Of a stretch of 64,000 nucleotides of DNA, positions 5,419-62,803 are shown piece after piece. Location of the stretch: sequence record NC_041975.1. One strand, written 5' to 3'. The translations under genes and the position numbers were made by a program. The first letter of the stretch is position 1; each line of letters starts with the position of its first letter. The notes beneath the pieces are model-generated. The model made no database searches. It had not been told where the DNA came from and saw only the letters and a list, made by a program, of their open reading frames with translations.

Positions 5419-5445
5419 GGAGAGCTTCGGCTCTCCTTTATGCCG
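5419..5445 (+). terminator. Hairpin (GGAGAGC-TTCG-GCTCTCC) followed by TTTATGCCG
   Basis: Perfect 7-bp stem with UUCG loop just after the stop codon at 5409. Confidence 0.85.
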
Positions 5446-5681
5446 GCCAGGTTTTCCACCCATCTCCTCTATCGGACAACAGATATAGATAGCGTCTGAT
5501 CAACGTCATTGATTACACTTTATTCTACGACCCCAACGTAACCTGTCGACATTCATAAGGGAATGCCACACCGTTGTTTATGTACGTCCTTATAAAAGAA
5601 GCGACCAAGCAAAAGACCAATAATCCGCAAACCTTCTTTAAACCAAACCTATTCTCTTTTCTTATTAATCTGGAGTGTTGT

Positions 5682-6014
5682 ATGGATTTCTCATTTCTAC
5701 TTGATCAAAACCCGTTGAGCCATTACAAAAACGAGTTACCGGCCTTAGTCCGTGAACTTAATGGCTCGATGGAAGATGATGCCCGTGTTTCCTGTGAAGA
5801 CGCACTGAATGCGCTGGTGCATCTCTTTGCAACACCGGGTGAGCTCATCAGCCTTACTATTCAACGCCACTGTAGCATTGCTGAGCAGAAGCTGCGCTAT
5901 ACGGCAAAGTTCATCAATGACACGGTGGCCACGGTCGAAGGACCTGAACCAATGGATCTGCGCTATGTGCTAGGGACTGCAGTATTTAACGCCATTACCA
6001 TTCCTATCAAATAA
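5682..6014 (+). CDS. Hypothetical protein (110 aa)
   Basis: GGAG RBS before ATG 5682; ends at a bidirectional terminator. Confidence 0.7.
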   Translation: MDFSFLLDQNPLSHYKNELPALVRELNGSMEDDARVSCEDALNALVHLFATPGELISLTIQRHCSIAEQKLRYTAKFINDTVATVEGPEPMDLRYVLGTAVFNAITIPIK

Positions 6015-6016
6015 AT

Positions 6017-6057
6017 CGGCATAAGAGGAGAGGCAAATGCCTCTCCTCTGTTATGCT
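6017..6057. terminator. Bidirectional terminator: CGGCATA-hairpin-TTATGC
   Basis: 12-bp stem AGAGGAGAGGCA/TGCCTCTCCTCT between convergent genes, with the motif on both flanks. Confidence 0.85.
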
Positions 6058-6075
6058 ACTTCTTTTTTTTTTGGT

Positions 6076-8934
6076 TTAGAACGTGAACTTCGGGTTTTTC
6101 GAATCGTCGTCGTTGAAGTCGTCATCCGTCGGATCTTCAAGACTCGGGTCAGCGGCATCATCATCATCCGGATTAGTGGTATCGTCCGGGTTCTGTATGT
6201 CATCTGGGTTCTGCTCATCTACCGGGGGTTCGTCGCCATCGGTGGGTGGCGTCGGCATGGCAAACGGGTCAGCTTCGCCCTCATCCGGTGGAGCATTCGG
6301 ATTAGCAGCGGTATCACCCAACTGCTCATCTTCCTTCAGCTTATCGTATTTACTCTGCAGCTTCTCTTCGACTTTCTTCTTATCTTTCAGATACGTGAGA
6401 ATGCCTTCCCAGACATTTTCATTGTAGCTGATGATTTCAGAAAGCAGGGCAGCGGTAGCGTTAGTGTCTTCACCCAGATCATTCAGGATTGCGTATTGCT
6501 GCGCATTACCGGAATCATCCATCCACTTACGCATGTACATTGCCACCAGAGACTGACGCCAGGTTTCCAGATCCTCTTCAGAACCATCCAGGAACTTGCC
6601 TACCACAGCATCTGGGAAGCGGTCATTGATGACAGCCTCAGTGTGTTCACGACGTGTCTGGTAGGCACGGGTGATCTCTTCCAGGTCGGTGGTTTCAGGT
6701 TCAGGTAGGGTGACGATGATTGAGTTAATGAAGTTGGTCAGCAAACGGGCTGCAATCGCATCTTCATCCTTAGCAACATCCGGGTTATTGGCTTTGAAGT
6801 CCTCAAACATCTTCCTGCCTTTAGCAGAAGACGGGCTCCAGAGATTCTTGTTGTTATGAATGAGGTCATACAACTCATTCATCAAGTTACCGGATTTGGC
6901 AGTCAGTTTACGCACCAGGTCAGAGGCATGACCACACACCACACGTTGTGACACGGTGATCTCTTGCGAGTACAGCGCATCGTTGTTGATGTGTTCGATG
7001 GCAAACTTGATGTCGTTCTGCGACGAGATGAGTTCAGGACGAATCCCCCACATCTGTGACAGGAACTCCATCAAGCGGTCATTCCACTCCGGATCAGGTG
7101 GGGTGATATCACGCTTGCCGTGAGAGATATCTGCATCAATCGACGGGTAGTGATCGTTACCACTGGTCTTTACAATCACGCTGGCACTGTCAAGGATGTT
7201 ACACACATCACGCGGGTTCTTGGCGCCGATGATCGAGGAGAGACCAAGGGTGGAGTTCAAGTGCGTGGTGATCACATCTTCGATGGTGTTTTCTGGCTCT
7301 GGGTCATCCTCATCCAGCGGGATGTTCAGGGTGGTGATGTTCACCGAGTTCGCAACGTTAGCAAGTGTAGTAGCAATGATGTTGGTCATCGCCATCGACG
7401 CATACAGACGTGAGCGGTCTAACAGAGAACGACCAATACCAAACCGGTTGTAGTCGAAAGCGAAATAGGTCATCGCTTCTTCTGGCAGGTACAGGATACG
7501 GGTCTGCAGGTTACGGCAAGTACGGGCAAACATGATACGCATGACTTCGTTGGTTAACCCCACGGTCATGGTCTGACCATAGGTGCCATTAGCCAGGCGT
7601 TGCACCAGATCTTTCTCCACTTCTTCGACATACTTGTTGTAGAAGGCAGACGTATCAAAGGTACATTTATTACCCGACTTCATCTCCGCCGCCATGGCAA
7701 TGATGCCTTTGGTGCTGTCGATAGCGCTGTTGGTATCCTGACGGTTCTTCATCTGATCTTGATAGAACTGATCATTCTGCGCCGTACGCACCGGGTTACC
7801 GTGTTCATCCAACAGAACGAAGTAACCCACGCGGTGTTTAAAGTCACCTGGGACGTGTACTGGGATCACACACTCTGAGGGCAGGTGCATCAGTAATGGC
7901 TGACCAACGTTTTCTTTAGACAGCTCGTCGTCACGTCCGACCGTGATGTTGTTGGTCGCTACGTAATCACGCTGTTTAAAGAGGTCGTTGTAGACATTGC
8001 TGTACTGCTCATCCGTTAACACCGGCGTCTGGGCAACTTTGCTGTCTTTGTCCTTACCGCCTTTTGCTTTCGCCCCACCTTTGTCTTCCAGTGCTTCCAT
8101 GCCGGCACGACGCAGACCTAACGGGATACGGTTCTTCTTCGACAGGTTGTGGCGCGCTAACGCCAGCTTAAAGCGCGGCAGACTTAACACCGCATCGTTA
8201 TCGGTGATGGTTAGCCCTAGCTCATTTTTATTATCACCATTCAGATGGTGCATGGTCATAATAGGCGTTTCGCCACTCATCAACGATTCGAGTGACGCGG
8301 TCATCAGCATATTAGAACTACCTGGGTTACCCAGATAGCCACGAGAGCGGAACTGTTGGGAGTGTGCGTCGTAGTCATCAGCAATTGCTTCCATGCCAGA
8401 GCCACGGGTATAACCGTTAATCACGTTATCCAGTGACGACTGGGAAAGCACTGCCCAGGCTGAGGAACCGGTCTTAAATAACATGTCCGGAACGATGTCA
8501 GCAAGTTTGTCAGTAATTTTATAGTTCTTTTCTATGTACTCCCGCACTGCGCTGATCAAAAGACTGTTAAGCTCTGTGTTCTTACCTTCATACGCTTCTG
8601 TGGTATAAGTCAGGGAGACCGTGCGTAAGTTACGCGGAGAGAGAATAGACGCCGTAAGGATCTTACACGCCTTTAAGGCTCCGGGTACACTTTCCATCAA
8701 TTCGGTATTCGAGTCGATACTGGTACTGGTCAGTTTGGAGATGTTTTGGAGCATCCCTGCAGAAGGACCACCATCCCGGTTGGAGCGTCCTGTACGTTTG
8801 GACGTATCCCGCGGTTTGTTGTCCTTCGGAACCAGTATGTCAATGATCGCTTTTGTCGCAGGATCTTTATTGAGTAAATTCAGTTTTGGCGTAGCAGCAC
8901 GGCTGTTACCTGCCAAGCGATTCGATTCGGCCAT
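6076..8934 (-). CDS. Putative portal protein (phiKZ gp129-like)
   Basis: About 950 aa from ATG 8934 with AAGGAG RBS. Segments LLMHLPSECVIPVHVPG...HRVGYFVLLDEHGNP and RILYLPEEAMTYFAFDYNRFGIGRSLL resemble phiKZ-type portals; divergent from a baseplate gene as in phiKZ-like phages. Confidence 0.7.
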   Translation of the reverse strand: MAESNRLAGNSRAATPKLNLLNKDPATKAIIDILVPKDNKPRDTSKRTGRSNRDGGPSAGMLQNISKLTSTSIDSNTELMESVPGALKACKILTASILSPRNLRTVSLTYTTEAYEGKNTELNSLLISAVREYIEKNYKITDKLADIVPDMLFKTGSSAWAVLSQSSLDNVINGYTRGSGMEAIADDYDAHSQQFRSRGYLGNPGSSNMLMTASLESLMSGETPIMTMHHLNGDNKNELGLTITDNDAVLSLPRFKLALARHNLSKKNRIPLGLRRAGMEALEDKGGAKAKGGKDKDSKVAQTPVLTDEQYSNVYNDLFKQRDYVATNNITVGRDDELSKENVGQPLLMHLPSECVIPVHVPGDFKHRVGYFVLLDEHGNPVRTAQNDQFYQDQMKNRQDTNSAIDSTKGIIAMAAEMKSGNKCTFDTSAFYNKYVEEVEKDLVQRLANGTYGQTMTVGLTNEVMRIMFARTCRNLQTRILYLPEEAMTYFAFDYNRFGIGRSLLDRSRLYASMAMTNIIATTLANVANSVNITTLNIPLDEDDPEPENTIEDVITTHLNSTLGLSSIIGAKNPRDVCNILDSASVIVKTSGNDHYPSIDADISHGKRDITPPDPEWNDRLMEFLSQMWGIRPELISSQNDIKFAIEHINNDALYSQEITVSQRVVCGHASDLVRKLTAKSGNLMNELYDLIHNNKNLWSPSSAKGRKMFEDFKANNPDVAKDEDAIAARLLTNFINSIIVTLPEPETTDLEEITRAYQTRREHTEAVINDRFPDAVVGKFLDGSEEDLETWRQSLVAMYMRKWMDDSGNAQQYAILNDLGEDTNATAALLSEIISYNENVWEGILTYLKDKKKVEEKLQSKYDKLKEDEQLGDTAANPNAPPDEGEADPFAMPTPPTDGDEPPVDEQNPDDIQNPDDTTNPDDDDAADPSLEDPTDDDFNDDDSKNPKFTF

Positions 8935-8966
8935 TTTAAAGAGGCTCCTTGCAGTGGGAGAATAGC

Positions 8967-11342: not shown

Positions 11343-11343
11343 C

Positions 11344-11375
11344 CGGCATAATGAGGGGTCGTCACTGACCCCTCA
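11344..11375 (-). terminator. Hairpin with TATGCCG on the minus strand
   Basis: CGGCATAA at 11344-11351 precedes the 9-bp stem TGAGGGGTC/GACCCCTCA; both flanking genes are plus strand. Confidence 0.6.
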
Positions 11376-11421
11376 AAAGTAATCCTATGTTTACACCACC
11401 TCTACGCCTAAGGAGAACCAC

Positions 11422-12297
11422 GTGCCTGCTAATCAGCCGATTCACGGTGAGGGTGACTATGTTGTAGACGTCGCATTGAGCTCTGCTGAGTTAGTGTATG
11501 GTTTGATTAACCATGACAACAACACAGACTACACCTCATTGACGTTACGGTTAGGAACCCCGACTGTAAATACCAATGCACAGCACGATCGTAATACCCG
11601 TATCTTTGCCCAAACTCGTCCAGGCGCGCCGAAGCAGGGGTCAACGTATTTCTATTATGATCGTATTTCGCTGGCCTACTACCTGCAAAACTACCCCGAC
11701 CTGGAAGTCGACATCACCGATGACATGCTCACCATGCGTGATCTGATTCCGTGGATGAACCAGACCTTTGGATTAGGGTTGGTTGCTGAAGATGTCCGGG
11801 CCGATTTAATTGACCGCACCCCGAACGCTGAAAACCGCTTTGCGATGTCAGCTGCCTCCATGGCCTGGCAGGATTCGATCGTCTTAAAGATCAACATCCC
11901 ACCGGTGGATATTGCCACCTTGACCGGCGACTCGGTCTTTGATGCCATTGAAGTGGTGTCAGAACACCCCCGCACTTACGGTCAGCTGTATGGCTACCAG
12001 GTTGACACCGCTGGTATGGCGGCATTACTGACCGGTCTGCCAATTGGTAAGCTGAGTAATCTCAATGGTGAGAACCTCACGCAAGCATTGTCCACTGCTA
12101 CTTCTGACTATTGGGCTTTCGATGCAACTCCAGTTGTCCGTAACCTCTATGGCGCTACTGTGCGCTTTAATGGTCGCAGTACTGACCAGGCCGTGTACCC
12201 CACTAAACCAGACAACGCGTACATGGTAATCGTGGATATTGTTGAGAGCGAATGCCTGGAGTTCGAAGGCCCGTTGGTTCTCTACTACACCCGTTAA
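11422..12297 (+). CDS. Virion structural protein, paralogue 1 of a tail/baseplate family
   Basis: GTG start with AAGGAG RBS. Shares YxRxxL, xGLxLxxxD and NLxGAxVx(F/Y)NG motifs with 12313-13131 and 14043-14912. Confidence 0.7.
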   Translation: MPANQPIHGEGDYVVDVALSSAELVYGLINHDNNTDYTSLTLRLGTPTVNTNAQHDRNTRIFAQTRPGAPKQGSTYFYYDRISLAYYLQNYPDLEVDITDDMLTMRDLIPWMNQTFGLGLVAEDVRADLIDRTPNAENRFAMSAASMAWQDSIVLKINIPPVDIATLTGDSVFDAIEVVSEHPRTYGQLYGYQVDTAGMAALLTGLPIGKLSNLNGENLTQALSTATSDYWAFDATPVVRNLYGATVRFNGRSTDQAVYPTKPDNAYMVIVDIVESECLEFEGPLVLYYTR

Positions 12298-12312
12298 CCG
12301 AGGAATCGCATT

Positions 12313-13131: not shown

Positions 13132-13151
13132 TCTGTTGAAAAGGAACAATA

Positions 13152-14027: not shown

Positions 14028-14042
14028 TGACACGGGGGTGAC

Positions 14043-14912: not shown

Positions 14913-14926
14913 CAGTGTATAAATAA

Positions 14927-14950
14927 AGGGTGGGGCTTCGGCTCTGCCCT
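14927..14950 (+). terminator. Hairpin AGGGTGGGGC-TTCG-GCTCTGCCCT, no U-tract
   Basis: UUCG-capped stem after the structural operon, directly upstream of the ruvC RBS. Confidence 0.55.
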
Positions 14951-14961
14951 TAGGGAGTCTT

Positions 14962-15567: not shown

Positions 15568-15568
15568 A

Positions 15569-16078: not shown

Positions 16079-16099
16079 ATAGCACCGAACTGATTTAAT

Positions 16100-16152
16100 C
16101 AGCATAAAGACAGAGAGCTTCCTTGCGGAGGCCCTCTGTCTTGTTTATGCCG
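16100..16152. terminator. Bidirectional terminator: CAGCATA-hairpin-TTTATGCCG
   Basis: Long imperfect stem at 16107-16142 between convergent genes. Confidence 0.85.
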
Positions 16153-16159
16153 GTTAAGG

Positions 16160-16934: not shown

Positions 16935-16943
16935 AAGTCGACC

Positions 16944-18173: not shown

Positions 18174-18258
18174 GCGCTCCGCCCTTAGTTTGAAAAATCA
18201 ATCATATGTGCTCGTTACTTAAACATACCTAAGCTATAAAATTACTTTGGAGACCGAC

Positions 18259-19233: not shown

Positions 19234-19234
19234 C

Positions 19235-20497: not shown

Positions 20498-20522
20498 GGG
20501 TGAGTGGGTGATCCCCTCACCC
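20498..20522 (+). terminator. Hairpin after tail gene, followed by a TATGACC variant
   Basis: GGGTGAG..GGG/CCC.CTCACCC stem just after the stop codon. Confidence 0.55.
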
Positions 20523-20550
20523 ACTTCCCTATGACCCAGGAGAGGTTTCG

Positions 20551-24042: not shown

Positions 24043-24049
24043 CCAGCAC

Positions 24050-27548: not shown

Positions 27549-27594
27549 CGGCATAGAGGGAGAGGTGTTAACCTCTCCCTCGTGCTTTATGCCG
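27549..27594. terminator. Bidirectional terminator: CGGCATA-hairpin-TTTATGCCG
   Basis: 11-bp stem GAGGGAGAGGT/ACCTCTCCCTC with an exact TATGCCG on both strands. Confidence 0.9.
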
Positions 27595-27595
27595 A

Positions 27596-32744: not shown

Positions 32745-32754
32745 CCTACATTAC
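32745..32754 (+). promoter_or_regulatory. Putative early-type phage promoter motif CCTACATTAC
   Basis: Recurs in intergenic DNA at 40045 and 58586 (variant at 54178); resembles the phiKZ early motif TATATTAC. Confidence 0.5.
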
Positions 32755-35222: not shown

Positions 35223-35253
35223 AAGTTAACATACCTGCACGATAATATACATT

Positions 35254-35285
35254 GGGAGGGGCGCAGGTCTCTCCCTTTTATGCCG
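35254..35285 (+). terminator. Hairpin + TTTTATGCCG
   Basis: GGGAGGGGC/GTCTCTCCC stem after the endolysin gene. Confidence 0.8.
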
Positions 35286-35317
35286 TTTGAATTTATTAAC
35301 CCCCAAGGAGGTTGTGT

Positions 35318-40404: not shown

Positions 40405-40414
40405 CTTACTTCTG

Positions 40415-40443
40415 GGGTGAGTGAAAACTCACCCTTTATGCCG
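40415..40443 (+). terminator. Hairpin (GAAA loop) + TTTATGCCG
   Basis: GGGTGAGT-GAAA-ACTCACCC. Confidence 0.85.
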
Positions 40444-40505
40444 GCGTGTTTAAAACAACTAAACTGCGCCATTATTTAGACACCGTTAATTAAAGGAATA
40501 CTGTT

Positions 40506-46556: not shown

Positions 46557-46585
46557 AAGAGGACTTCGGTCCTCTTTTATGCCCG
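46557..46585 (+). terminator. Hairpin (UUCG) + TTATGCCCG
   Basis: AAGAGGAC-TTCG-GTCCTCTT. Confidence 0.85.
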
Positions 46586-47573: not shown

Positions 47574-47603
47574 GGAGAGGCGCATAGCCTCTCTCTTATG
47601 CCG
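47574..47603 (+). terminator. Hairpin + TTATGCCG
   Basis: GGAGAGGC/GCCTCTCT stem. Confidence 0.85.
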
Positions 47604-47620
47604 TCAAAAGGAAATTAACC

Positions 47621-48031: not shown

Positions 48032-48033
48032 TC

Positions 48034-48465: not shown

Positions 48466-48466
48466 C

Positions 48467-49712: not shown

Positions 49713-49737
49713 GTTCCATTAACCCAAAGAGGTAATT

Positions 49738-50031: not shown

Positions 50032-50039
50032 ACCATCAG

Positions 50040-50065
50040 GGGGAGGGAAACCTCCCCTTATGCCG
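50040..50065 (+). terminator. Hairpin (GAAA) + TTATGCCG
   Basis: GGGGAGG-GAAA-CCTCCCC. Confidence 0.85.
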
Positions 50066-50077
50066 TATGGAGGGGTT

Positions 50078-51117: not shown

Positions 51118-51147
51118 TTTAACCCCTGTTTATATAGAAAGGAAAAT

Positions 51148-51594: not shown

Positions 51595-51605
51595 GAGAGG
51601 GCGTC

Positions 51606-52789: not shown

Positions 52790-52806
52790 CCTATTAGGAG
52801 CTGTTT

Positions 52807-53397
52807 ATGGAGAGGATAACATTAGCTTGGCTAAGAGCTAATCAAGGAAGGAAATCTCTGGAAGATCGTTTGTTTCAATTCGGTCACGTTTATAGTGAGA
52901 GAGATTCCTGTTTCACCTGGCGTGGGATGGTGGATAATTACGGCTACGGAAAGATAAAGGTTAAAAGTAGATTGGTGGGTGCACACAAACTGTCTTATCT
53001 GCTATTCAAAGGGGATATTCCAGAAGGTATGGTAGTTAGACACACGTGCGATAACCCAGTCTGTATTAACCCCTCTCATTTAATCGCGGGTACGGTAAAG
53101 CAAAACGTTCATGATGCAATAGCAAAAGGCCGTGCTTCTTTTCAGAATGTTATCAATTCATCGGTATGTAAGTTTCTGCCGGCCAACGCTATTATTATGG
53201 TAGATAGAAAGATAGGCCCACTACTATGTTATGCAACAACCCGGCGATTAGCCCTTGCTGATAATTCTAAAGTTTACTGGGGTCGTCCGTGTAGGTCACA
53301 CGGCATGCCTTGGAGAAGAACCAGTAATGGCGAATGTGTCTATTGCAGACACGAATACCGAGCAGGTGTGAAGTATACACCTAATGGAAAGAGGTGA
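52807..53397 (+). mobile_element. Free-standing HNH homing endonuclease
   Basis: CFTWRG...GYG....AHKLSY...GDIPEGMVVRHTCDNPVCINPSHL..GT..QN..D..KGR plus a C-terminal CxxH...CxxC. More AT-rich than neighbours and uses AGA codons; AGGAG RBS. Confidence 0.9.
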
Positions 53398-53412
53398 TCC
53401 CTTTATCTTCCG

Positions 53413-53488
53413 CGGGTGAGGGTTAGAACCCGGCTGTGGCCGCATAGCCAAAGTCGGTTAATCAAAGTCGACGGATTTGGATTACCCG
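53413..53488 (+). ncRNA. Candidate structured RNA (four-way junction) downstream of the HNH gene
   Basis: Closing stem CGGGTGA/TTACCCG encloses hairpins GGGT-TAGA-ACCC, GGCTGTG-GCCG-CATAGCC and GTCGG...TCGAC. Folded by eye only. Confidence 0.35.
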
Positions 53489-53550
53489 GCGTGACTTGTC
53501 ATTGTTTCACTTTGTTCTACTACACAAACAGCTCAACTCTCTCATAATTC

Positions 53551-53581
53551 AAGGGGTGGGGTAACTCACCCCTTTATGCCG
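53551..53581 (+). terminator. Hairpin + TATGCCG
   Basis: AAGGGGTGGG-GTAA-CTCACCCCTT. Confidence 0.85.
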
Positions 53582-53596
53582 CAAGGATCTATTATC

Positions 53597-53929
53597 ATGC
53601 AGGAATTCTTCAAAAGCTACGGCACGTACTTCTTTGATGTACTCATGTTTATCATGGTGTTCGCCTGGTGTTTCTGTGGCAGTGGCGGCACACGTCATGA
53701 CAAAAACAAATGGTTGCGTTACGGCGCACCTGTTGCATTGGGTCTTTTTGTTGTGCTGGTCGTCCACGGGTTTGGTGCATTTGATCGTTATCTGGAAAGG
53801 AATAAGTGCGCTGACTTACCAATAGGTGTCGGCGTAATGATTGAAGGCCGCTGCTACAAGCGCGTTGATGGACCCGTGTACATATCCGCCGACAGTACCG
53901 TGTACAAGGAGAGCAATGTACATGACTGA
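53597..53929 (+). CDS. Small 2-TM membrane protein
   Basis: AAGGA RBS; two hydrophobic segments. Confidence 0.65.
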   Translation: MQEFFKSYGTYFFDVLMFIMVFAWCFCGSGGTRHDKNKWLRYGAPVALGLFVVLVVHGFGAFDRYLERNKCADLPIGVGVMIEGRCYKRVDGPVYISADSTVYKESNVHD

Positions 53930-54125
53930 TTTGTGGTTGTACATTGCAATCTTTCTGCTCTGTTATATCTGGGCATTCTTCGGTCTTCCACCTACCGGTA
54001 ATAAAAGAAAGCTTTATCTGTATCCGGGAATCGTTGCAGTAGCGTTCTGTTTAGGTGTAATGGCGATTAAGAACTGCAGTGATTCAACCACACGATATCA
54101 ACCGCTGTACAACGTGCATCAATAA
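53922..54125 (+). CDS. Small 2-TM membrane protein
   Basis: AAGGAG RBS; ATG 53916 or 53922. Confidence 0.6.
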   Translation: MTDLWLYIAIFLLCYIWAFFGLPPTGNKRKLYLYPGIVAVAFCLGVMAIKNCSDSTTRYQPLYNVHQ

Positions 54126-54128
54126 CGG

Positions 54129-54156
54129 GAGGAGGCTTTGGCCTCCTCTTATGCCG
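54129..54156 (+). terminator. Hairpin + TTATGCCG
   Basis: GAGGAGGC-TTTG-GCCTCCTC. Confidence 0.85.
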
Positions 54157-54226
54157 ACTATTCTTTTTTGGTTATTTCCTACATCTACCCGCAAATCATT
54201 TAGCCCATTATACACTGGAGTTGTTC

Positions 54227-54781
54227 ATGGAAAAGATTACGAGTGATACGATCCTTGCTAAGTTACGTGAGGTGGCAGAAACAAACAAAGAAAACCAACA
54301 TCGGAAACTCCGCTCAATAAGCCAAACCATGGCGTACAACATTGAAGCGATCGTCGAGTTGATTGCCTTATCCGGTGAGATGCACCTTGATCTGCTTGAT
54401 CGATACAAGGTTGATGCGATCATAGAGCCGCATTACAAAGGCAATCAACGGGCTTATAGTCGACTGAGTCATACCGCCTCTATTCACACGGGGATGGAGT
54501 ACCTTGCCGGCAACGCGCACATCTACACCAACAACGAGGGTAAAGAAGCGGTACGAATCGTCTGTACCTTTAAGTTTAAACGCGACTTCCTGCAACCTAG
54601 CTTATTACCTAAGGTACTTCACTACTGTCTGCAGGAGCTTCAACCGCAGTTTGATGATGGCGGCAGTAGCGTCTTCTTCCACACACCGGGTGAGTTAGAT
54701 AATCCCCGTCTTAAAGCCATTCCGGGCTGGCACGTCGACGCTAACGTCCGTGATAACTCCATTGTCATTAGTTTACGTTAA
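54227..54781 (+). CDS. Hypothetical protein
   Basis: GGAG RBS before ATG 54227. Confidence 0.7.
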   Translation: MEKITSDTILAKLREVAETNKENQHRKLRSISQTMAYNIEAIVELIALSGEMHLDLLDRYKVDAIIEPHYKGNQRAYSRLSHTASIHTGMEYLAGNAHIYTNNEGKEAVRIVCTFKFKRDFLQPSLLPKVLHYCLQELQPQFDDGGSSVFFHTPGELDNPRLKAIPGWHVDANVRDNSIVISLR

Positions 54782-54791
54782 GGAACCAAAC

Positions 54792-55502
54792 ATGATCGTT
54801 GTTGTTGTTGATACTGAATCGACTGCTTTGGATGAGCTCGCGGGTATTCTGAGTTTGTCCGCTATTCGCACTAACGTGGCTGACATGAGTTGCATCAAGC
54901 ACCTGATCGGCGTGCACCAAGCCGGCAAGACGCATGACGACATCTTCCATGCCGTATTGAACCTCAATGAACAATACGTGATGGGTCGTACCTTCTTGCA
55001 AAGCACGCAGGATTGGTGGATGAAGAAAACCACCCCGGCGGCGAAGGCTTCAGTAACCGGACCAACGCAGTCTGCAAAAGATGCTTTGACAGCATTTGTG
55101 GTTTTCATCGAAAAGGCCATTGAGGCGACGATTAACGAACGCGGGGAGAAAGCGAAGGTCCAGCTGTACTACCGTGGCGACTTCGATGCTAAAGCCATTG
55201 CGTCCCTGGCAAAAGCGGTGGGTGTTGAACTCCCGTATATTTTCAATCAGAACAAAGAGATCCGCACATATATCGATGCCAAGCTGGACACGGATATCGG
55301 TTATATCCCGTGGCTCGGTTACCCAGAAGGACTGGGGCGTCATAGCTCACTCGATGATGTTCTAATCGATGGCTTCGAGATGGCGGTGGCCTATCGCATC
55401 AATCACCTCGAAAAGTTCGATAAAAAGTCGGTGCCGGGCGAGATCGCCAAACTGAAAGAAACGTACCCTGTTCCGGAGAAAACCCATGCAAAATCTAAAT
55501 GA
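54792..55502 (+). CDS. DEDDh-family 3'-5' exonuclease
   Basis: ExoI VVVDTESTAL, ExoII RGDFDAKAI, ExoIII HSSLDDV; AAGGA RBS. Confidence 0.82.
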   Translation: MIVVVVDTESTALDELAGILSLSAIRTNVADMSCIKHLIGVHQAGKTHDDIFHAVLNLNEQYVMGRTFLQSTQDWWMKKTTPAAKASVTGPTQSAKDALTAFVVFIEKAIEATINERGEKAKVQLYYRGDFDAKAIASLAKAVGVELPYIFNQNKEIRTYIDAKLDTDIGYIPWLGYPEGLGRHSSLDDVLIDGFEMAVAYRINHLEKFDKKSVPGEIAKLKETYPVPEKTHAKSK

Positions 55503-56208
55503 CCGTATCTTTGCCAATTATGATGGTTACATTGAAGCTATTGATGCGCATTTTAAACCTACCTATCAACTGCAGCTGGCTGAGCAAGTCATCCCGGCTG
55601 AACAGATGGATAAGCTTGTAACCTGGATGGACCACAACGCCCATGTCAAGGGCGCAACCGTCTATCTGATGGAGTTGGTGCCTGATCTCGATAAACCGCA
55701 TCCTGTGCAATCAGAGATGCGTGTGTTTATTGCACTCGGTATGTTTAATCGTGAAGTCAACCCTGATTTGCCTTACTGGTGTCATGTACATCACCATTAT
55801 CCGGTTAACCTCGCTGTCGACTTGATTGTTACTGACCTGCAAGGCGTTCCTGTAACCCATGCCGTTCTGACTGCGTTTAAGTCATTTGATCGAGCGCGTA
55901 CCTACAGGGATAATCTCGGCGGCAAAGGTGGACATCAACCGCATCACGAAATCCATACTGGCATTATTGACCAAAGTGGTAAGGTGATCTTCGAAGCCTA
56001 CGGGAATATCAACTGGCATACCAAGAATGCCATTCGCCGGCTGGCTGAACGACAGATCCTACAGGAAGATACCGAGTTGTCAGCGGTGTGGTTACTGGCG
56101 GGTTTAAAAGCAGGTGTCAACTGGAAAGTCGAAGACCACGTTGACATCATGAAGGCAATCGATACTTTCCGTCCGAGGAATACCCATGATTTTAACGGCT
56201 ATGTTTAA
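55486..56208 (+). CDS. Hypothetical protein
   Basis: 240 aa; overlaps both neighbours. Confidence 0.7.
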   Translation: MQNLNDRIFANYDGYIEAIDAHFKPTYQLQLAEQVIPAEQMDKLVTWMDHNAHVKGATVYLMELVPDLDKPHPVQSEMRVFIALGMFNREVNPDLPYWCHVHHHYPVNLAVDLIVTDLQGVPVTHAVLTAFKSFDRARTYRDNLGGKGGHQPHHEIHTGIIDQSGKVIFEAYGNINWHTKNAIRRLAERQILQEDTELSAVWLLAGLKAGVNWKVEDHVDIMKAIDTFRPRNTHDFNGYV

Positions 56209-56950
56209 GAAGTGCTTTGGTGCGTCGTCTGTCTATAAAGAAGATGACGGCAGTACACGCATTACCGCTGACCAGTATGAACTTACGCTGGGTCGATCCT
56301 ACCATCCTAAGCTTAAGCGTAAGGTAGGTCGGGGTTTTGGTTTCTATGTCGAAAATGGCGAGAAGCTCGAGTTCGTCTTGCGGGGTTACTGGTTTGTGTT
56401 GATCGCCTGGAGCAAGAAGCGCAAATCACTCAAGTGGGACGAAGCGGAGAATGCACCGACTTACGGCTTCAATGTTGTTGACTCTGACTTAGCGATCTAT
56501 CTCGGCAACGAATCCGCTAAGTCAGACAAACACATCAGCATGCGTAGTCGTAGCAAATATATCCCCCTGCCCTGGGCCTGGACCTTCCATAAGCGTGAAG
56601 TGTTAACCACCCGTGACACCTGGGCTGATGTCAAAGAAGGTGCGTTGTCTCAAGAGTGGTCGTTCCCCGCCACATACGTCACCAAGCACAATGAAGTGCA
56701 AGAGATGATGATCGAAGCGAAGATGGAGCGCATGACCTGGCGCCTGGCATGGCTCCCTTGGTTCGTACCGGTTACCAAGAAAGACCGCTCGGCGAGTTAC
56801 AAGTACCACGGGAACGGTGGTAACGGGGTTGGTCACGACGCCAGTGGCTGGAAAGGCGGGGTCATCGGTGGCGGGGTCATCATGCGAGACAATGAACACA
56901 ACCCGAAAGAAACATTCGACCGTTTAATTAAAGAGCAGCATTACGGCTAA
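56201..56950 (+). CDS. Hypothetical protein (Trp/Lys-rich)
   Basis: Long ORF; ATG 56201 preferred over 56186. Confidence 0.7.
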   Translation: MFKKCFGASSVYKEDDGSTRITADQYELTLGRSYHPKLKRKVGRGFGFYVENGEKLEFVLRGYWFVLIAWSKKRKSLKWDEAENAPTYGFNVVDSDLAIYLGNESAKSDKHISMRSRSKYIPLPWAWTFHKREVLTTRDTWADVKEGALSQEWSFPATYVTKHNEVQEMMIEAKMERMTWRLAWLPWFVPVTKKDRSASYKYHGNGGNGVGHDASGWKGGVIGGGVIMRDNEHNPKETFDRLIKEQHYG

Positions 56951-56962
56951 GAAGGAAAACAC

Positions 56963-58114
56963 ATGCGTCAGTATTTGGATGGGATTCGTTACATCTTTGA
57001 GAACGGGTCACAACGAGGGGATCGCACCGGGGTAGGTACGTTGTCGGTGTTCTCGATGAAGCAGACTTATGATCTGCGTCTGGGATTCCCACTGGTCACC
57101 AGTAAGAAAGTGCGTATCGATTTTATTATCGAAGAGCTCATCTCCTTCCTGTCGGGTAATCCCGATATGCCGGGTGTGGGTATCTGGGATGATTGGCGTG
57201 TTAAAGACGAAGTCTCCCGTGAAGTCCCGTTAGAGAACCACGAGCGTTTAAAACTCTGGGTTGAGAAGTCGGACCTGAAGTATAACGTTGCTTACCTTCA
57301 ACTCAATGCGATGGGTTCTGTCGAAGCGGGTCATCGTTTCCTGGATGAGCAAGGGATTCCGCGTAACAGGAAAGAAGTACTGGTAGCAGAAGGTGCACTC
57401 AATGCACCCTATGGGCCAGCGTGGCGTGCGTGGAAAGGTCGTCTGGGCGAAGTGCATGATCAGATCGGTTATCTGCTCAAGTTGCTTAAAAACAATCCTA
57501 CGAGTCGTCGTATGCTATTGTCTGCCTGGGACCCAGCGAACATGCCGGATGAGTCTATCAGCCCGCAGGATAACATCATTGATGGCAAGCCACCTCTGAC
57601 TCCGTGTCATTGGGCGTTTGAGCTGTACACTGACGAAATCCTGGCAGAGGAACGCCTTGATTGGGTCGAAGCTAACGCACCTAGCCTCTGGGAAGACTAC
57701 AATGATCGTTCAGGACGTGGTCAATGGCTAGGCGACACAGACAGTAAGCGCCTTCATGAATTCCTGGACGAAGCCGGCGTACCGAAGTATTACCTGGATC
57801 TGAAGTATCACCAGCGTTCATGTGACTATATGGTTGGCGTGCCGTATAACATCGCCAGCTATGCGGTGTTGCAGCACATGTTCGCCGCCACCTGTAACAT
57901 GATCCCGCGGATACTGGAAGCGGATATGACTAACATCCATATCTACAACTTCCACAAAACCAATGCGGTCATGCAGGCCAGTCGCAGCCCACGCGCACTA
58001 CCCACTCTGAAGGTACTCGCCGCTCACGATAAGTTGGAAGACTATACGTTGGAAGACTTTGAACTCGAAGGTTATGATCCGCATCCTTTTATTAAATATG
58101 AAAGAGCGGTCTGA
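56963..58114 (+). CDS. thyA: Thymidylate synthase with two insertions
   Basis: DRTGVGT, GFPLVTSKK, YG..WR.W, NPTSRRMLLSAW, PCH (catalytic Cys), QRSCD..GVPYNIASY, HIY. Confidence 0.97.
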   Translation: MRQYLDGIRYIFENGSQRGDRTGVGTLSVFSMKQTYDLRLGFPLVTSKKVRIDFIIEELISFLSGNPDMPGVGIWDDWRVKDEVSREVPLENHERLKLWVEKSDLKYNVAYLQLNAMGSVEAGHRFLDEQGIPRNRKEVLVAEGALNAPYGPAWRAWKGRLGEVHDQIGYLLKLLKNNPTSRRMLLSAWDPANMPDESISPQDNIIDGKPPLTPCHWAFELYTDEILAEERLDWVEANAPSLWEDYNDRSGRGQWLGDTDSKRLHEFLDEAGVPKYYLDLKYHQRSCDYMVGVPYNIASYAVLQHMFAATCNMIPRILEADMTNIHIYNFHKTNAVMQASRSPRALPTLKVLAAHDKLEDYTLEDFELEGYDPHPFIKYERAV

Positions 58115-58146
58115 TCCACTGGTACGTTGAAGGGAGCACAACGGTA

Positions 58147-58512
58147 ATGAAGAGAGAGTCCAGTTACACCCTGGTCTTTGGGGAAGGCAGTACTGAAGAA
58201 GATGTCAATACCCTGCGTGAGATGGTGTCACACATGCGGGGGTTGACCGGGTTGTCGCAACTGGGGGCGTTTGAGGTGTTCGTTACCCATTATGAATTGC
58301 AACGTAAAGACGCAGGGCTAATCACCAGTAATCTTCCGGTGAATGCACAGTCGTTGTTTGATGTCAGTGATCGACAGAACTGGCTGACACCGCTGTTCAC
58401 TTCACGGGGGTTAGTGGCGTGTGACTTGTTGTTGTTACTGAAGCAAGGCAAATGGACCGGAGAACACCTCAAGGTGACCTTTCGGGTAAAAGGCATCAGG
58501 GCGAAAGCATAA
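58147..58512 (+). CDS. Hypothetical protein
   Basis: 121 aa; GGGAG RBS. Confidence 0.6.
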   Translation: MKRESSYTLVFGEGSTEEDVNTLREMVSHMRGLTGLSQLGAFEVFVTHYELQRKDAGLITSNLPVNAQSLFDVSDRQNWLTPLFTSRGLVACDLLLLLKQGKWTGEHLKVTFRVKGIRAKA

Positions 58513-58518
58513 CGCATA

Positions 58519-58546
58519 CGGAGGGGTCATTCCCTCCGCTATGCCG
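58519..58546 (+). terminator. Hairpin + TATGCCG
   Basis: CGGAGGG/CCCTCCG stem. Confidence 0.8.
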
Positions 58547-58585
58547 ATTAAGTTTTTGACAAAGTTTACTGCAGATCTTTTCAGA

Positions 58586-58595
58586 CCTATATCAC
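58586..58595 (+). promoter_or_regulatory. Putative early-type promoter motif CCTATATCAC
   Basis: CAGACCTATATCACGT directly after a terminator; near-identical to 40041-40056. Confidence 0.5.
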
Positions 58596-58644
58596 GTCGG
58601 TGAATAACCTTTCACTAATTAACCAATCCGTAGGGAGTTTTATC

Positions 58645-60021
58645 ATGGCTGCATTAAAATCTAAAGTTGAACTGTTTCACTGGTATCAGGAACTGAAAAC
58701 TGAATTTAAAACCGGCAAGATTACCGTGTTCGAATTTGAGCGGCAAGTGCTCAGCGAAATTCTTTCCCTGACCGATACTGGTAAAACACCATCTACTGCC
58801 AAAATCAGTTTGGTAGTGGACATCCTTAATTCTGTGGTTTTTGATCATGTGTTTACCGCAGACGGTATCATTGACCTGGACAACATGCTCGCTCGTGAAC
58901 ACGTACGCAACATTTCGGAATTGACGGCAGCACGCAATAACTTTATTACCATACAAGCCCAGGCCCGTCTGAACAAAGAAAAGGAACAGACTGCGAAACC
59001 AGCAGAGCAGAAGGCATTTGCCAAGTTTCCAACGAAAGAAGAGCTCGAATATTGGGTTAATGCCAGAAAGCTATTCCGTTATGGTAACCCCAATACGCTC
59101 GGCACTGAAGCATACCAGGAGGTTGTCAAATACTGGCATCTGGTCGATAAATATCTGGGTACATTAAAACTGGAACTGGATCACACCGACCCTAACTACG
59201 TCGATAACATCTTGTTGATTGACTACTTTGTATCGTTGGTCGCCAAGCAAGAGGTTCCTGAGGAAGAACGCAGGCATCTGAAAGACACACTTAGCAGTCT
59301 ATATGCGTGCCCCATTAAAACCCCACACATCGATGCATTTGTCGAACGTGGCCAACACCCCCTTCCAGTTAAGCCAAAACAACCACCCATCGCGCAACAA
59401 GCCATCGACCGCGCTATTGCCTGGCGTGAAGAGGAAACCAAAACAAACCATCAGCAAAAAGACATATTACGAGAATTCGCCGATCAATACTGTCCGGTAA
59501 TGGTGGCCAAGCAACATGCCACTCAGCAGTTGTTTGATTTCGTTGCTCGTGCGGTGAAACGTGTCTTGACCGCCATTGCTCAGCCAAACAACCCGGAAGA
59601 CGCCGAGATGCTGGCAAAAGGTCATGCCATCAACATTCTCAATGTTAAGCATGGTGTAATTGGTGTCAGTACCACGATTACCAGAAACGGTCTGGTCAAG
59701 TTACGCATCTTCGCTGAACGTGAACTATGTAACGAGGACTACGGTATTCCGACTCTGTCGTATAATCAAGTCCGTCAATCACCTCATGCAACGTTCAGCA
59801 TACCAGTGCCGGCACTGATAGATGGGTTCATTAACATGTGGGATATCCCTAATCAGGCCCCTCGCCATATGCATAATAGCGTAGGCGGTATGTTGGGTAA
59901 TCCCTATCCGTTACAGCAGCTTGATGGTTTGATGTCAGCTATTGCAAGAGAAGCAGCCGAGTACGGCGTTACGCCTACTTATGGCAGTACTGAAGACAGC
60001 CTTATCGTTGTTCTCCATTAA
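58645..60021 (+). CDS. Hypothetical protein sharing N-terminal helical motifs with 60083
   Basis: GGGAG RBS; WYQELK..FKTGKI motif. Confidence 0.75.
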   Translation: MAALKSKVELFHWYQELKTEFKTGKITVFEFERQVLSEILSLTDTGKTPSTAKISLVVDILNSVVFDHVFTADGIIDLDNMLAREHVRNISELTAARNNFITIQAQARLNKEKEQTAKPAEQKAFAKFPTKEELEYWVNARKLFRYGNPNTLGTEAYQEVVKYWHLVDKYLGTLKLELDHTDPNYVDNILLIDYFVSLVAKQEVPEEERRHLKDTLSSLYACPIKTPHIDAFVERGQHPLPVKPKQPPIAQQAIDRAIAWREEETKTNHQQKDILREFADQYCPVMVAKQHATQQLFDFVARAVKRVLTAIAQPNNPEDAEMLAKGHAINILNVKHGVIGVSTTITRNGLVKLRIFAERELCNEDYGIPTLSYNQVRQSPHATFSIPVPALIDGFINMWDIPNQAPRHMHNSVGGMLGNPYPLQQLDGLMSAIAREAAEYGVTPTYGSTEDSLIVVLH

Positions 60022-60029
60022 TCCACACG

Positions 60030-60056
60030 GGGAGGTTCGCCTCCCTTTTATTTTTT
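60030..60056 (+). terminator. Intrinsic terminator (UUCG) with U-tract
   Basis: GGGAGG-TTCG-CCTCCC-TTTTATTTTTT. Confidence 0.85.
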
Positions 60057-60082
60057 AATTAACCTACTGTGAGAATTTAACC

Positions 60083-60784
60083 ATGAACAAAGAAACTTAT
60101 ACTACCTGGTACAATGGATTAAAAGAAAGATTGGCGGCAGGTGACATTGATCAAGTTACTTATGAATCGCTTATCATCAGTAATCTTCATTCGTTGCTGA
60201 CTCGACACAGACATACCCGGCACGATATTAACCATCTGCCGTTACCAAAACATTTCGAACTGATTAACCATTATTTCGAACTGATTGCTGATGCAGAAAT
60301 GTCAGAAAGAAATGCCAGACATTTAGTCTCTTTTGTGGCCAGTATTATCGAGGCGATCCCGGCAGCCAGGGCATTCGGAAAGAAACATAACACACCACTA
60401 CCCCCTTCTAAGGAAGAGCTCGAGGGTAAACTTGCTTGGGGACGTAAGAAAGTCGCTACCCCAACTGAAGCGATGCGTGGTCGTCCGGTGATCACCCAGG
60501 TCAACGAACCTGAGAACGAAGTAACCATTGAACTACCCTGGAAAACCGCATTGCACGTTTACAAAGGGTTCCTGGTAAAGGCACTGATGTCAAAGCACGG
60601 ATACCAATACAGTGATGCGTATAACCACATTACTGATCATCAGAACAAATACGACGAACTCTTGGCAGAAGTCCTCAACGACATTATTGCTAATAAAGAG
60701 TCGCATCTGGTGTCGGTAGGTGGCGGCATCACTGCAGCGGGTACTGGTCTGGTGGTAAGCGGGATTATTAAGCCGGAGGAATGA
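60083..60784 (+). CDS. Hypothetical protein: helical N-domain fused to an RNAP beta-prime-like fragment
   Basis: RKKV.........RPVIT.......ELPW..AL..YK..L...L...GY....A...I......YD.L..E.L..IIA resembles phiKZ-type beta-prime; see findings. Confidence 0.6.
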   Translation: MNKETYTTWYNGLKERLAAGDIDQVTYESLIISNLHSLLTRHRHTRHDINHLPLPKHFELINHYFELIADAEMSERNARHLVSFVASIIEAIPAARAFGKKHNTPLPPSKEELEGKLAWGRKKVATPTEAMRGRPVITQVNEPENEVTIELPWKTALHVYKGFLVKALMSKHGYQYSDAYNHITDHQNKYDELLAEVLNDIIANKESHLVSVGGGITAAGTGLVVSGIIKPEE

Positions 60785-61344
60785 TGAAAGGAGAGATAGA
60801 GACACGCTTCAGAAGACACTACGGCAACCACATTAAACGGGGTAGTGATATCGCAGTGCCTTTATACCACATTAGTCTACAGAATGACTTGGAGGGGCTA
60901 TGGCGACCTAAAGCCCCTGACTCGCCATTTGATATTCCGAAGAAACCCAGCATCATTACTGAAATGCCGCTCCCGCGTATCTGTGTAGCACCATCTATCG
61001 AACAGTGCTTCTGGGCAATCTATCCCAATATCTCTAAGTTCTTTGAAGAGGAAGAATACGCTGCGGTTTGTTTTGCGGTTTATCAACCGATTCTGCATGC
61101 CGGTATTGCTGTCGTGGATACCAGTACGTTAACGCAATGCCGACTGGTGCACGATGCACATATTACCGGCGAGCATTGGTTACTCAGTGATACCACCATG
61201 TGTGTGATTGACTTTATTCAGGTTAAGAACACTTCACACGGTGAGTTCGTAAAGTTCCATCCGTTTGATACTCCGGCTGGTAACGAGTGGGAACTTGCCC
61301 CTAAAAATGTTGTTTATCATTCACTTAAATTAACGGAGTTGTAA
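60784..61344 (+). CDS. Hypothetical protein (PRICVAPSIEQC family)
   Basis: E..PRICVAPSI..C and VHDAHITGEHW motifs of a widespread phage family. Confidence 0.7.
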   Translation: MKGEIETRFRRHYGNHIKRGSDIAVPLYHISLQNDLEGLWRPKAPDSPFDIPKKPSIITEMPLPRICVAPSIEQCFWAIYPNISKFFEEEEYAAVCFAVYQPILHAGIAVVDTSTLTQCRLVHDAHITGEHWLLSDTTMCVIDFIQVKNTSHGEFVKFHPFDTPAGNEWELAPKNVVYHSLKLTEL

Positions 61345-61348
61345 ATCC

Positions 61349-61993
61349 ATGGTAACTGCTAGAAAAGCTAATAAGACCTTAGGTGAGCACGCGGTGGCTC
61401 ATGAGGCAGTAACACGCTTAGGTAGCAACAAGAAAGTCAAACCAGCTAAGCCGCTTTGGACACTGGAGAACATCGAGGACAATCTGGTTGGTCAAGGTAT
61501 CCTTGCCTACTTGAAACGCCACACGTCGTTATCGATCCGTGACATCAACACCGCGGCTAACCGCCTGACGAAGATTGCTGATTCAGATATAAAGGAAGGG
61601 AAAGCGCGTGATTACGTGGCACGAGTTATTGGGTACAACAATTACGACGCTCTCAACGTCACCGTTCGTGCAGCGGTACCTGTGCGCAATCATGTACAAC
61701 GTCGTAAAGCAAATAAGCCGGTCACAGAGCTGCTGATAGAAGACGAGGAACTACCGCCGGTAACACATACTGAAATCAACCCCTTGGTGATGTTAGCCCT
61801 ACAGCGTGAGATCTCTAAACGCGGCTTTCGTCTCCTGGGCAAGAACTACCGGGCCTTCGTTAACAAGGATAACCCCGAGCACACTTTTACGTTGATGCAG
61901 GCGTATAACTACCTTGCCAAACAACTGGGTTATCCGGACTATCACTCTATGCCCCGTCAATACCCAATCATTAACTTGCGCTACGTCGATTAA
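61349..61993 (+). CDS. Hypothetical protein with internally duplicated helical motif
   Basis: ARDYVARVIGYNNYDAL and AYNYLAKQLGYPDYHSM. Confidence 0.7.
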   Translation: MVTARKANKTLGEHAVAHEAVTRLGSNKKVKPAKPLWTLENIEDNLVGQGILAYLKRHTSLSIRDINTAANRLTKIADSDIKEGKARDYVARVIGYNNYDALNVTVRAAVPVRNHVQRRKANKPVTELLIEDEELPPVTHTEINPLVMLALQREISKRGFRLLGKNYRAFVNKDNPEHTFTLMQAYNYLAKQLGYPDYHSMPRQYPIINLRYVD

Positions 61994-62015
61994 CCTATTG
62001 TAAGGAATAAAGAAC

Positions 62016-62765
62016 ATGACGACGACTTTTCCGAAAGAGATGAATGCAGCTTTCCATCCTGATAACGAGCAAACCACCCAGTTGTGCAAAACGATCCAGC
62101 AGATCAGTGGGGTGGAGATCAAACGTGTACATGTGGTGATGGCGATCCACCATTACAAACAAAACGATACGGCACATCAGCCTGACCACATGCTGGCGGT
62201 CTTAGCAGAAGCAGCCCACATCATCCAGTCGTTTCCTGACCTGGAGAAATGGCGCACCCAGATCATGTTAGGGTGCCTGTTCCATGACACCCACTGTCAC
62301 ATCGATCGGGATATGCACCACCTGCTAGGCGCCGAACATGCTCAAGAGGCATTACTGGAGTATGCGTGTGGTTATGGGATGTCACGTGCGGATGTCTACC
62401 TGATCAGTCAGGCCGTACTGGAGCATCGGGCTTCCTGGAAGTACCCGCGTATTAACCCTGTATCCAACGCTGTAGCGTCTGCAGATCGTGGCTACCCTGA
62501 TCTAAAGAAATACATCCGTCGTGCTGTACAGTACCGTTACAAGCGTATGGCAGTCATCAACATGAACACCATCATCGATGAGTCGATCGAACACATGGTA
62601 GAGAAGTTCGGTGATGGCGGTTATGCCTGGGAAAGCTACCCGACGTATGCAGCGGTGATGCACGGTGATGCGATTCAACAAGTGAAGCAACAACTGCGCA
62701 GTAAAGAAGGAAAGGCGCAGCTCAAAGAGTACGCTGAACTCCACTTTGATGAGTGGGTAGAATAA
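62016..62765 (+). CDS. HD-domain phosphohydrolase
   Basis: H...H (AHQPDH), CLFHDT, HH..GA, LEHR and ASADR motifs. Confidence 0.85.
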   Translation: MTTTFPKEMNAAFHPDNEQTTQLCKTIQQISGVEIKRVHVVMAIHHYKQNDTAHQPDHMLAVLAEAAHIIQSFPDLEKWRTQIMLGCLFHDTHCHIDRDMHHLLGAEHAQEALLEYACGYGMSRADVYLISQAVLEHRASWKYPRINPVSNAVASADRGYPDLKKYIRRAVQYRYKRMAVINMNTIIDESIEHMVEKFGDGGYAWESYPTYAAVMHGDAIQQVKQQLRSKEGKAQLKEYAELHFDEWVE

Positions 62766-62772
62766 GCTACGT

Positions 62773-62803
62773 GGCCGGAGGATTACCTCCGGCTGTTATG
62801 CCT
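62773..62803 (+). terminator. Hairpin + TTATGCCT
   Basis: GGCCGGAGG-ATTA-CCTCCGGCT. Confidence 0.8.

Follow-up and report, generated by a model that had tools for sequence, protein, structure and literature searches.

A hairpin-TATGCCG element at gene ends of Erwinia phage Special G as the probable Agricanvirus version of the phiKZ stop signal

Introduction

The transcription terminators of the jumbo phages phiKZ and 201phi2-1 are the closest described counterparts of the element studied here. In phiKZ, 133 terminators were mapped by ONT-cappable-seq (cappable-seq with Oxford Nanopore Technologies reads), with sites called only where read depth drops by at least 20% across the site, and 61 of them share the motif BCCYCCCCHWWDGGGRRGGBYTTATKYYGT, in which a TTAT region comes after a stem-loop (E 1.7e-212; Putzeys et al. 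2024, Microlife, PMC10914365). Motif A of 201phi2-1 (n = 59, E 2.6e-250) 'strongly resembles' the phiKZ motif, and eight strong 201phi2-1 terminators were tested in a terminator trap with two reporters in uninfected cells (PMC11512511). Here we describe a GC-rich hairpin followed by the heptamer TATGCCG (the box) in a 64,000 nt stretch of Erwinia phage vB_EamM_Special G (nt 1-64000 of NC_041975.1 / KU886222.1; hereafter the window) and in the whole 273,224 bp genome. This element is the Agricanvirus version of the known phiKZ stop signal and not a new kind of signal; what is new here is the fixed CCG, the reversed purine and pyrimidine arms of the stem, the placement of phiKZ 3' ends within the box and a contrast with phage AR9.

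Two further systems bear on the comparison. The class II signal of T7 RNA polymerase (RNAP) is a sequence-specific and hairpin-independent pause and termination signal, used by a single-subunit polymerase. The first four bases of the box, TATG, are also the core of the phiKZ late promoter, where they are necessary in vitro and the G is position +1 (PMC4666361). The authors of the Agrican357virus genome paper applied MEME and FIMO without reporting a motif worth pursuing (PMC6690015), so we found no earlier description of the box for the genus.

Phage and sequence examined

Special G belongs to the genus Agricanvirus. It can be counted as a phiKZ-like nucleus-forming jumbo phage because its annotation includes the nuclear shell protein (chimallin), the tubulin PhuZ and several split 'RNA polymerase beta subunit' genes, as expected of a lineage with two split multisubunit RNAPs. 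A tblastn search with its chimallin reaches phiKZ, 201phi2-1, PhiPA3 and Goslar (24% identity with the phiKZ protein), and gp2 (1001..2689, plus strand) aligns with 28% identity to phiKZ gp123, a beta-like subunit of the non-virion RNAP (nvRNAP). Genome-wide counts were made on the whole Special G sequence joined from six pieces. Sequencing runs looked up for RNA evidence were all of DNA or metagenomes, apart from two of unknown kind, and these two proved over 53000-58999 to be low-depth contigs of 90-99% similar relatives, carrying no 5' or 3' end information.

TATGCCG in place of the U-tract after gene-end hairpins

An initial annotation of the window had proposed that a conserved TATGCCG replaces the U-tract after most intergenic hairpins on both strands, and all the positions that it gave proved correct. 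Exact copies occur on the plus strand at 5439, 16146, 27588, 35279, 40437, 47597, 50059, 53575, 54150 and 58540, with variants at 6052 (TATGCTA), 46578 (TATGCCC) and 62797 (TATGCCT), while minus-strand copies read as CGGCATA at 6017, 11344 and 27549 and as CAGCATA at 16100. In total, the window holds 21 copies of TATGCCG compared to 6.8 +/- 2.6 expected from dinucleotide shuffles, and none of 100 shuffles reached 21. Thirteen of these copies lie 0-6 nt 3' of a hairpin with a folding free energy (dG) of -14 to -28 kcal/mol, 25-70 nt past a stop codon on the same strand. The other eight (508, 1667, 12876, 29830, 33672, 40983, 50610 on the minus strand and 57166), which is about the number expected by chance, are in coding sequence without a strong hairpin. 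Across the genome, 40 of 69 copies fall within the 6% of the sequence that is intergenic and 29 within coding sequence, a roughly 20-fold difference in density.

The association was then counted from the structure, taking hairpins with dG <= -12 that start no more than 60 nt from a stop codon, for which 103 of 328 gene ends qualified. Exact TATGCCG follows 37 of the 103 (background 0.16% per scanned interval, binomial p 1e-76), TATGCY follows 51 and TATG follows 60 (background 3.7%, p 1e-57), while a further seven are followed by near variants such as TATACCG and TGTGCCG. A real T-tract, with at least six T in the next 8 nt, follows only about eight. A standard scan for a hairpin plus T-tract between 44 and 64 kb returned 20 sites against 17.5 expected and missed every hairpin-box. 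Given the gene-end counts and a T-tract scan at chance level, the proposed replacement of the U-tract therefore holds. Two other approaches were less informative. A maximal-order Markov ranking of 7-mers did not single out TATGCCG, because sub-words of the heptamer are also enriched, and was superseded by the comparison of intergenic with coding sequence and by the hairpin-anchored count; counting perfect hairpins genome-wide diluted the signal with chance hairpins in coding sequence, so gene-end hairpins were used instead.

Alignment of the 60 sites on TATG gave the consensus Y-T-TATG-C(84-92%)-C(71-84%)-G(71-85%), with no conservation past the final G. TATG begins only 0-3 A/T bases past the last G/C pair of the stem, in agreement with the short U-tracts initially described, so the heptamer spans positions of about 1-9 after the stem, where a U-tract would normally be. 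This coincides with the zone of RNA release in intrinsic terminators, 7-9 nt after the stem. The stems themselves vary between sites, with a mostly purine-rich 5' arm (GGAGAGG...CCTCTCC), although some belong to near-identical families (119741, 154903 and 253827; also 96526, 172133 and 272275). A partial inverted copy, GCATAA, is common 5' of the hairpin; judged by eye, it is complete at convergent junctions and present at only some tandem sites. Extended RNA pairing between this upstream CATAA and the downstream TTATG was considered as the cause of the conservation and rejected, since the upstream half is present at only some tandem sites while the downstream box is conserved.

Placement at gene ends

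Of the 60 sites, 32 separate tandem genes and 28 belong to convergent junctions. A box is present on 28 of the 36 sides of 18 convergent junctions and on none of the 36 sides of 18 divergent junctions (Fisher p 8e-13), and at the three convergent junctions of the window (6017, 16100 and 27549) it flanks the hairpin on both sides, as had been noted. All hairpin-linked exact copies except one (11344, minus strand) are co-directional with the upstream gene. The box thus shows the placement of a phiKZ-type terminator, at gene 3' ends, co-directional and paired where genes converge; for a promoter the reverse would be expected. Divergent junctions carry CCTAYATTAY together with a TATG that mostly continues with T or A (TATGT, TATGA), once as TATGCCC and never as CCG.

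Conservation in Agricanvirus relatives

Ea35-70 is almost identical to Special G at the box sites, and the more distant AH06 shows what changes around the box. At the site at 6020, the stem GAGGAGAGGC/GCCTCTCCTC is replaced in AH06 by GAGGAGGAGC/GCTCCTCCTC, a compensatory change with both flanks kept, and at 47597 the entire stem is a different sequence. At 27588 the box is kept while both the stem and the downstream sequence have changed, and at 16146, 27588 and 40437 the sequence diverges right past the final G. TTATGCCG is unchanged in AH06 at all of these sites (6020, 47597, 16146, 27588 and 40437), and the antisense-oriented box at 11344 is degraded or lost. The first 50 kb contain six exact TATGCCG copies in AH06 and nine in Ea35-70. 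The initial observation that stems vary while the heptamer is conserved was thus confirmed both between sites and between orthologous sites, and the alignments show selection on the heptamer as a unit.

Comparison with phiKZ and 201phi2-1

The phiKZ and 201phi2-1 terminators share with the Special G element a GC-rich stem-loop that has (T)TTAT, G or T, two pyrimidines and G immediately downstream. They share its location at gene 3' ends and its bidirectional use at convergent genes, and both phages likewise form a nucleus and transcribe with their own split beta/beta' polymerases. The Special G element has the stem-loop, the TTAT and the K-Y-Y-G, and TTATGCCG(T) is a literal instance of the YTTATKYYGT that ends the phiKZ motif. 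When the relatives were surveyed with the same hairpin finder as Special G, TATG followed 38 of 98 hairpins in phiKZ and TATGYYG followed 17 of 98, over backgrounds of 3.8% and 0.3%, and the corresponding counts in 201phi2-1 were 10 and 7 of 33.

There are also clear differences. The two pyrimidines are fixed as CC in Special G (TATGCCG at 37 sites), while TTG, TCG or CTG prevail in phiKZ, and the CCG of Special G fits its higher G+C content (50% versus about 37-38% in the phiKZ stretches read). The T that follows the G in the phiKZ consensus is not conserved in Special G, and the purine-rich 5' arm of the Special G stem (GGAGAGG...CCTCTCC) contrasts with CCYCCCC...GGGRRGG in phiKZ. Finally, the phiKZ terminators are known from transcripts, whereas the Special G box is predicted from DNA.

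Of the published phiKZ transcription termination sites (TTS; supplementary tables of the bioRxiv version), 24 could be placed on two 50-kb stretches, 19 of them with a scorable TAT[G/A]. With a slash after the last transcribed base, transcripts end at TAT/G in six cases, at TATGY/ in six, at TATGYY/G in five and one base further in one. These TTS lie 3-8 nt past the stem and none is beyond the conserved G. In this relative, RNA ends therefore fall within the motif and not away from it, which together with the position at gene 3' ends, the direction, the convergent pairing and the match to the phiKZ motif supports the initial view of a termination-associated signal.

The box also differs from other terminator classes. 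Like a canonical intrinsic terminator, it combines a GC-rich gene-end hairpin with a conserved zone 7-9 nt after the stem, but the U-tract is cut to 1-3 U plus UAU and then gives way to GCCG, which would form a strong hybrid, and box sites are missed by standard predictors. The canonical class is defined by some 7-9 nt of U-tract adjoining the stem, which hairpin-box sites lack, and only a few of its members are present in Special G (for example at 24048 and 60027). The T7 class II signal resembles the box in being a short conserved sequence, not a U-tract, that is tied to termination by a phage polymerase, but it is hairpin-free. In contrast, the box as a Special G signal always comes with a hairpin, while the heptamer alone is tolerated in genes.

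Probable termination by the phage polymerases

Taken with the phiKZ and 201phi2-1 data, these results make it probable that the boxes are terminators of the phage's own multisubunit RNAPs. Such a terminator would consist of a GC-rich RNA hairpin, 0-3 U and UAUGCCG in place of the U-tract, and Special G transcripts would be expected to end 4-8 nt past the stem, running no further than UAUGCC, which the conserved G follows. A minimal weak upstream segment of the RNA:DNA hybrid would come from the short UUAU, and the polymerase could pause where the RNA is released, at the YY/G step, whose pyrimidine 3' end and incoming G agree with the general pause consensus of multisubunit polymerases. A pause of this kind would supply what the U-tract normally gives. 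The heptamer may be read sequence-specifically by a phage RNAP or another phage factor, as initially suggested. Retention of the box from Pseudomonas phage phiKZ to the Erwinia phages, despite shell proteins that are only 24% identical, suggests a shared reader, most simply the unusual polymerases.

Several points weigh against this interpretation. ONT-cappable-seq locates 3' ends to within about 2 nt, and termination cannot be told from 3' trimming or processing in such data. The pause at YY/G is one that we infer, and about 10 nt upstream of this step the Special G stem has a pyrimidine, where the E. coli pause consensus has G. The heptamer is tolerated without a hairpin on the sense strand of genes, so it would need the hairpin and has no strong effect alone. 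In addition, the pattern is weak in Goslar (nt 1-50000), where it follows 3 of 25 hairpins and TTATATCGT-like tails are found. Because Goslar is a chimallivirus, the family does not carry the box uniformly: the pattern was seen in phiKZ, 201phi2-1, AH06 and Ea35-70 but only weakly in Goslar, and clades of chimalliviruses may have different terminator boxes. The Goslar tails occupy the place of TATGYYG at, for example, 1865 and 33937, both on the minus strand.

An alternative that we regard as improbable is that the box is a signal for RNA processing or stability, where transcription runs on and a host or phage endoribonuclease cuts single-stranded UUAUGCCG, or 3' exonucleases halt at the hairpin, and the box marks mature 3' ends. 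The inability of ONT-cappable-seq to tell processing from termination leaves room for this, but the phiKZ sites were only called with a fall in read depth of at least 20% (PMC10914365). Similarly, the phiKZ ends scatter over four to five positions of the box, as trimming would give, whereas conservation stops exactly at the release position of intrinsic terminators, 7-9 nt after the stem. The actual stop could be a run of T8-10 seen 8-15 nt past the hairpin at several sites of the plus strand, yet most sites are without a downstream T-run. Special G does have a candidate enzyme, since gp149 is annotated as a ribonuclease, but the selected 201phi2-1 terminators that were tested between reporters in uninfected cells point to termination in so far as they carry the motif (PMC11512511).

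There is only a very remote chance that the unit CGGCATA-hairpin-TATGCCG is a DNA-level element with no role in transcription, either a palindromic binding site or a mobile repeat: several copies do form near-identical families and the whole unit is a long palindrome at convergent junctions, but tandem junctions conserve only the downstream half (with the upstream CATAA in some, by eye), hairpin-linked exact copies follow the direction of the upstream gene with one exception, the stems differ between sites and in AH06 orthologues while the box is kept, and the box recurs in phages as far removed as phiKZ.

Hairpin plus YTTATGCCG provides a simple rule for operon ends in Agricanvirus genomes, including that of RAY, which is a model for the phage nucleus. 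This is of practical value as, in this phage group, most ends of transcription units escape standard predictors.

The terminator TATG and the late promoter

As TATG is the phiKZ late-promoter core, the initial annotation had suggested that termination and re-initiation could be coupled. The hairpin would then stop one transcript and nvRNAP would restart at the adjacent TATG (G = +1). The in vitro requirement for TATG with a G start (PMC4666361) makes this conceivable, and 32 of the 60 sites do have a same-strand gene 12-135 nt beyond, but the other 28 point antisense into a convergent gene. No hairpin-box occurs at any of the 18 divergent junctions, which are expected to hold promoters only, and TATG is never followed by CCG there, although the junction before gp320 has a TATGCCC without a hairpin. 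The phiKZ start sites are also at odds with a dual role: P012, P016, P017, P023 and P054 lie 20-50 nt past T011, T014, T015, T021 and T046, P049 uses a second TATG 5 nt past that of the terminator, and among the sites placed no published start is on the G of a hairpin-adjacent TATG. P119L, the best-studied phiKZ late promoter, has no upstream hairpin. A combined terminator and promoter is therefore highly improbable, even though half of the residues that form the TATG pocket in phiKZ gp123 are retained in gp2. Termination is supported and re-initiation is not, at least in phiKZ, because the phiKZ TTS are inside the box and the start sites are off its G. The terminator and the late promoter share four bases, and Special G encodes a gp123 homologue in gp2, but the promoter TATG comes without an upstream hairpin (P119L) and without a conserved YYG, and terminator TATGs are not start sites in phiKZ.

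The shared TATG raises a further idea about mechanism. A pocket in the lobe of phiKZ gp123 binds single-stranded non-template TATG at late promoters, and 14 pocket residues have been named (PMC12809450). Seven of these are invariant in phiKZ, Special G, AH06 and Goslar (S144, F151, K158, K190, H331, S334 and Q466), and three more differ between gp123 and gp2 by aromatic-for-aromatic changes (H185Y, Y399H and Y406F), which would make gp2 a candidate reader of the box. It is a speculative and rather unlikely possibility that the promoter pocket of nvRNAP (gp123, or gp2 here) also grips the TATG of the terminator during elongation, holding or scrunching the complex to YY/G while the hairpin forms. 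The phiKZ 3' ends at TAT/G and TATGYY/G and the partial conservation of the pocket in Special G are consistent with this. AR9 provides a contrast: its late promoter is AACA-N6-TA/G, with the template strand being read (PMC5312081), and simple T-rich tails follow its terminator hairpins, only 1 of 29 of which has TATG. This fits a grip by the pocket but is no more than a lead, as a single contrast from a 27% G+C genome. If a grip of this kind operates, one protein-DNA contact would mark both the start and the end of a transcript, and a sigma-like built-in pause would replace the U-tract.

Sites in the window

All features in this section are given in window coordinates unless stated otherwise. 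The first predicted terminator follows gp4 (5416..5445, plus strand) and consists of a hairpin (dG -14), TT and TATGCCG, 30 nt past the stop codon; it is identical in Ea35-70. Three predicted bidirectional terminators are located between convergent genes. At gp5/gp6, the plus half (6024..6058) comprises a hairpin, GT and TATGCTA with T10 at 6064-6073, and the minus half, after gp6 (6017..6049, dG -21), a hairpin, T and TATGCCG. At gp13/gp14, the plus half (16107..16152) has a hairpin with GTT and TATGCCG and the minus half (16100..16142) a hairpin directly followed by TATGCTG, while at gp20/gp21 the plus half (27556..27594) has GTGCTT before TATGCCG and the minus half (27549..27581) has TATGCCG immediately after the hairpin.

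The other plus-strand sites are also predicted terminators. TATGCCG is preceded by TTT after gp29, which encodes a transglycosylase (35253..35285), by T after gp40 (40414..40443), by CT after gp52 (47574..47603) and by C after gp71 (58519..58546), and directly abuts the hairpin after gp57 (50034..50065), before gp64 (53549..53581) and after gp65 (54127..54156). Variants are found after gp51 (T plus TATGCCC, 46557..46584) and gp76 (GT plus TATGCCT, 62771..62803), and a weaker one after gp18 (TATGACC, 20498..20536). The remaining element, a hairpin with AT and TATGCCG at 11344..11375 on the minus strand, is antisense-oriented between the plus-strand genes gp7 and gp8. By analogy it would stop antisense transcription only, and it resembles antisense terminators, which account for 9% of the sites in the six phages studied by Putzeys et al.

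At two of these sites the box flags likely wrong start codons, as the annotated starts of gp58 (50060) and gp64 (53576) are the ATG within TATGCCG. In-frame ATGs with a Shine-Dalgarno sequence lie 18 and 21 nt downstream, at about 50078 and 53597, and the ribosome-binding site GGAGGGG precedes the former. These downstream positions are better candidates for the start than those annotated. Leaderless starts at the box ATG were rejected, since each gene has a better downstream ATG with a ribosome-binding site and the box ATG would be in frame by chance in one case out of three.

At 7 of the 60 sites, six of which are at convergent junctions, T8-10 follows 1-6 nt past the box, and each of the seven is on the plus strand; examples are 6064-6073 in the window and genome positions 96570, 110957, 119784, 143844, 217767 and 229896, among others. 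At the convergent T-run sites, the plus direction reads as a long hairpin with a U-run, equivalent to a canonical terminator, and the minus direction as a hairpin with TATGCCG only. The plus-direction hairpin is long because the two boxes pair and lengthen the stem. This asymmetry might mean that different polymerases act on the two strands.

Putative promoter elements

TATGCCCC, which has no hairpin, lies between a divergent DnaB-like helicase gene and gp320 (genome 269208-269236). Its genomic position is that of the phiKZ late promoter P119L, between gp118 and gp119, and it is a candidate late promoter. Upstream of the capsid gene of Special G is TTTATGTACATAGACAGG, which resembles TATGTAGACAG of P119L.

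The genome has 21 copies of YCTAYATTAY (mostly CCTACATTAC), none of them on the minus strand and 14 of them between genes, and the sequence resembles the core of the phiKZ early (virion RNAP) promoter, TATATTAC. Sites are found at 32745-32754 in the window and at genome positions 66111, 66977, 79714, 86508, 90211, 99633, 117550, 140354, 157841, 161979, 199071, 223082 and 273149, and several copies are 20-40 nt past a TATGCCG terminator. YCTAYATTAY is probably the early promoter of Agricanvirus. Matches to sigma-70-like promoters between 44001 and 64000 of the window showed no excess (23 versus 25.7 in shuffled sequence), which fits with the host polymerase not being expected to transcribe Special G, as can be deduced from phiKZ biology (PMC4666361). 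Finally, TTAACC and AATTAACC are about 4-fold enriched in intergenic DNA, where they are almost always on the plus strand (TTAACC has 34 intergenic copies). They occur at 35296-35303, 40495-40502 and 47614-47620 of the window and resemble the phiKZ middle-promoter element AAanTTACc.

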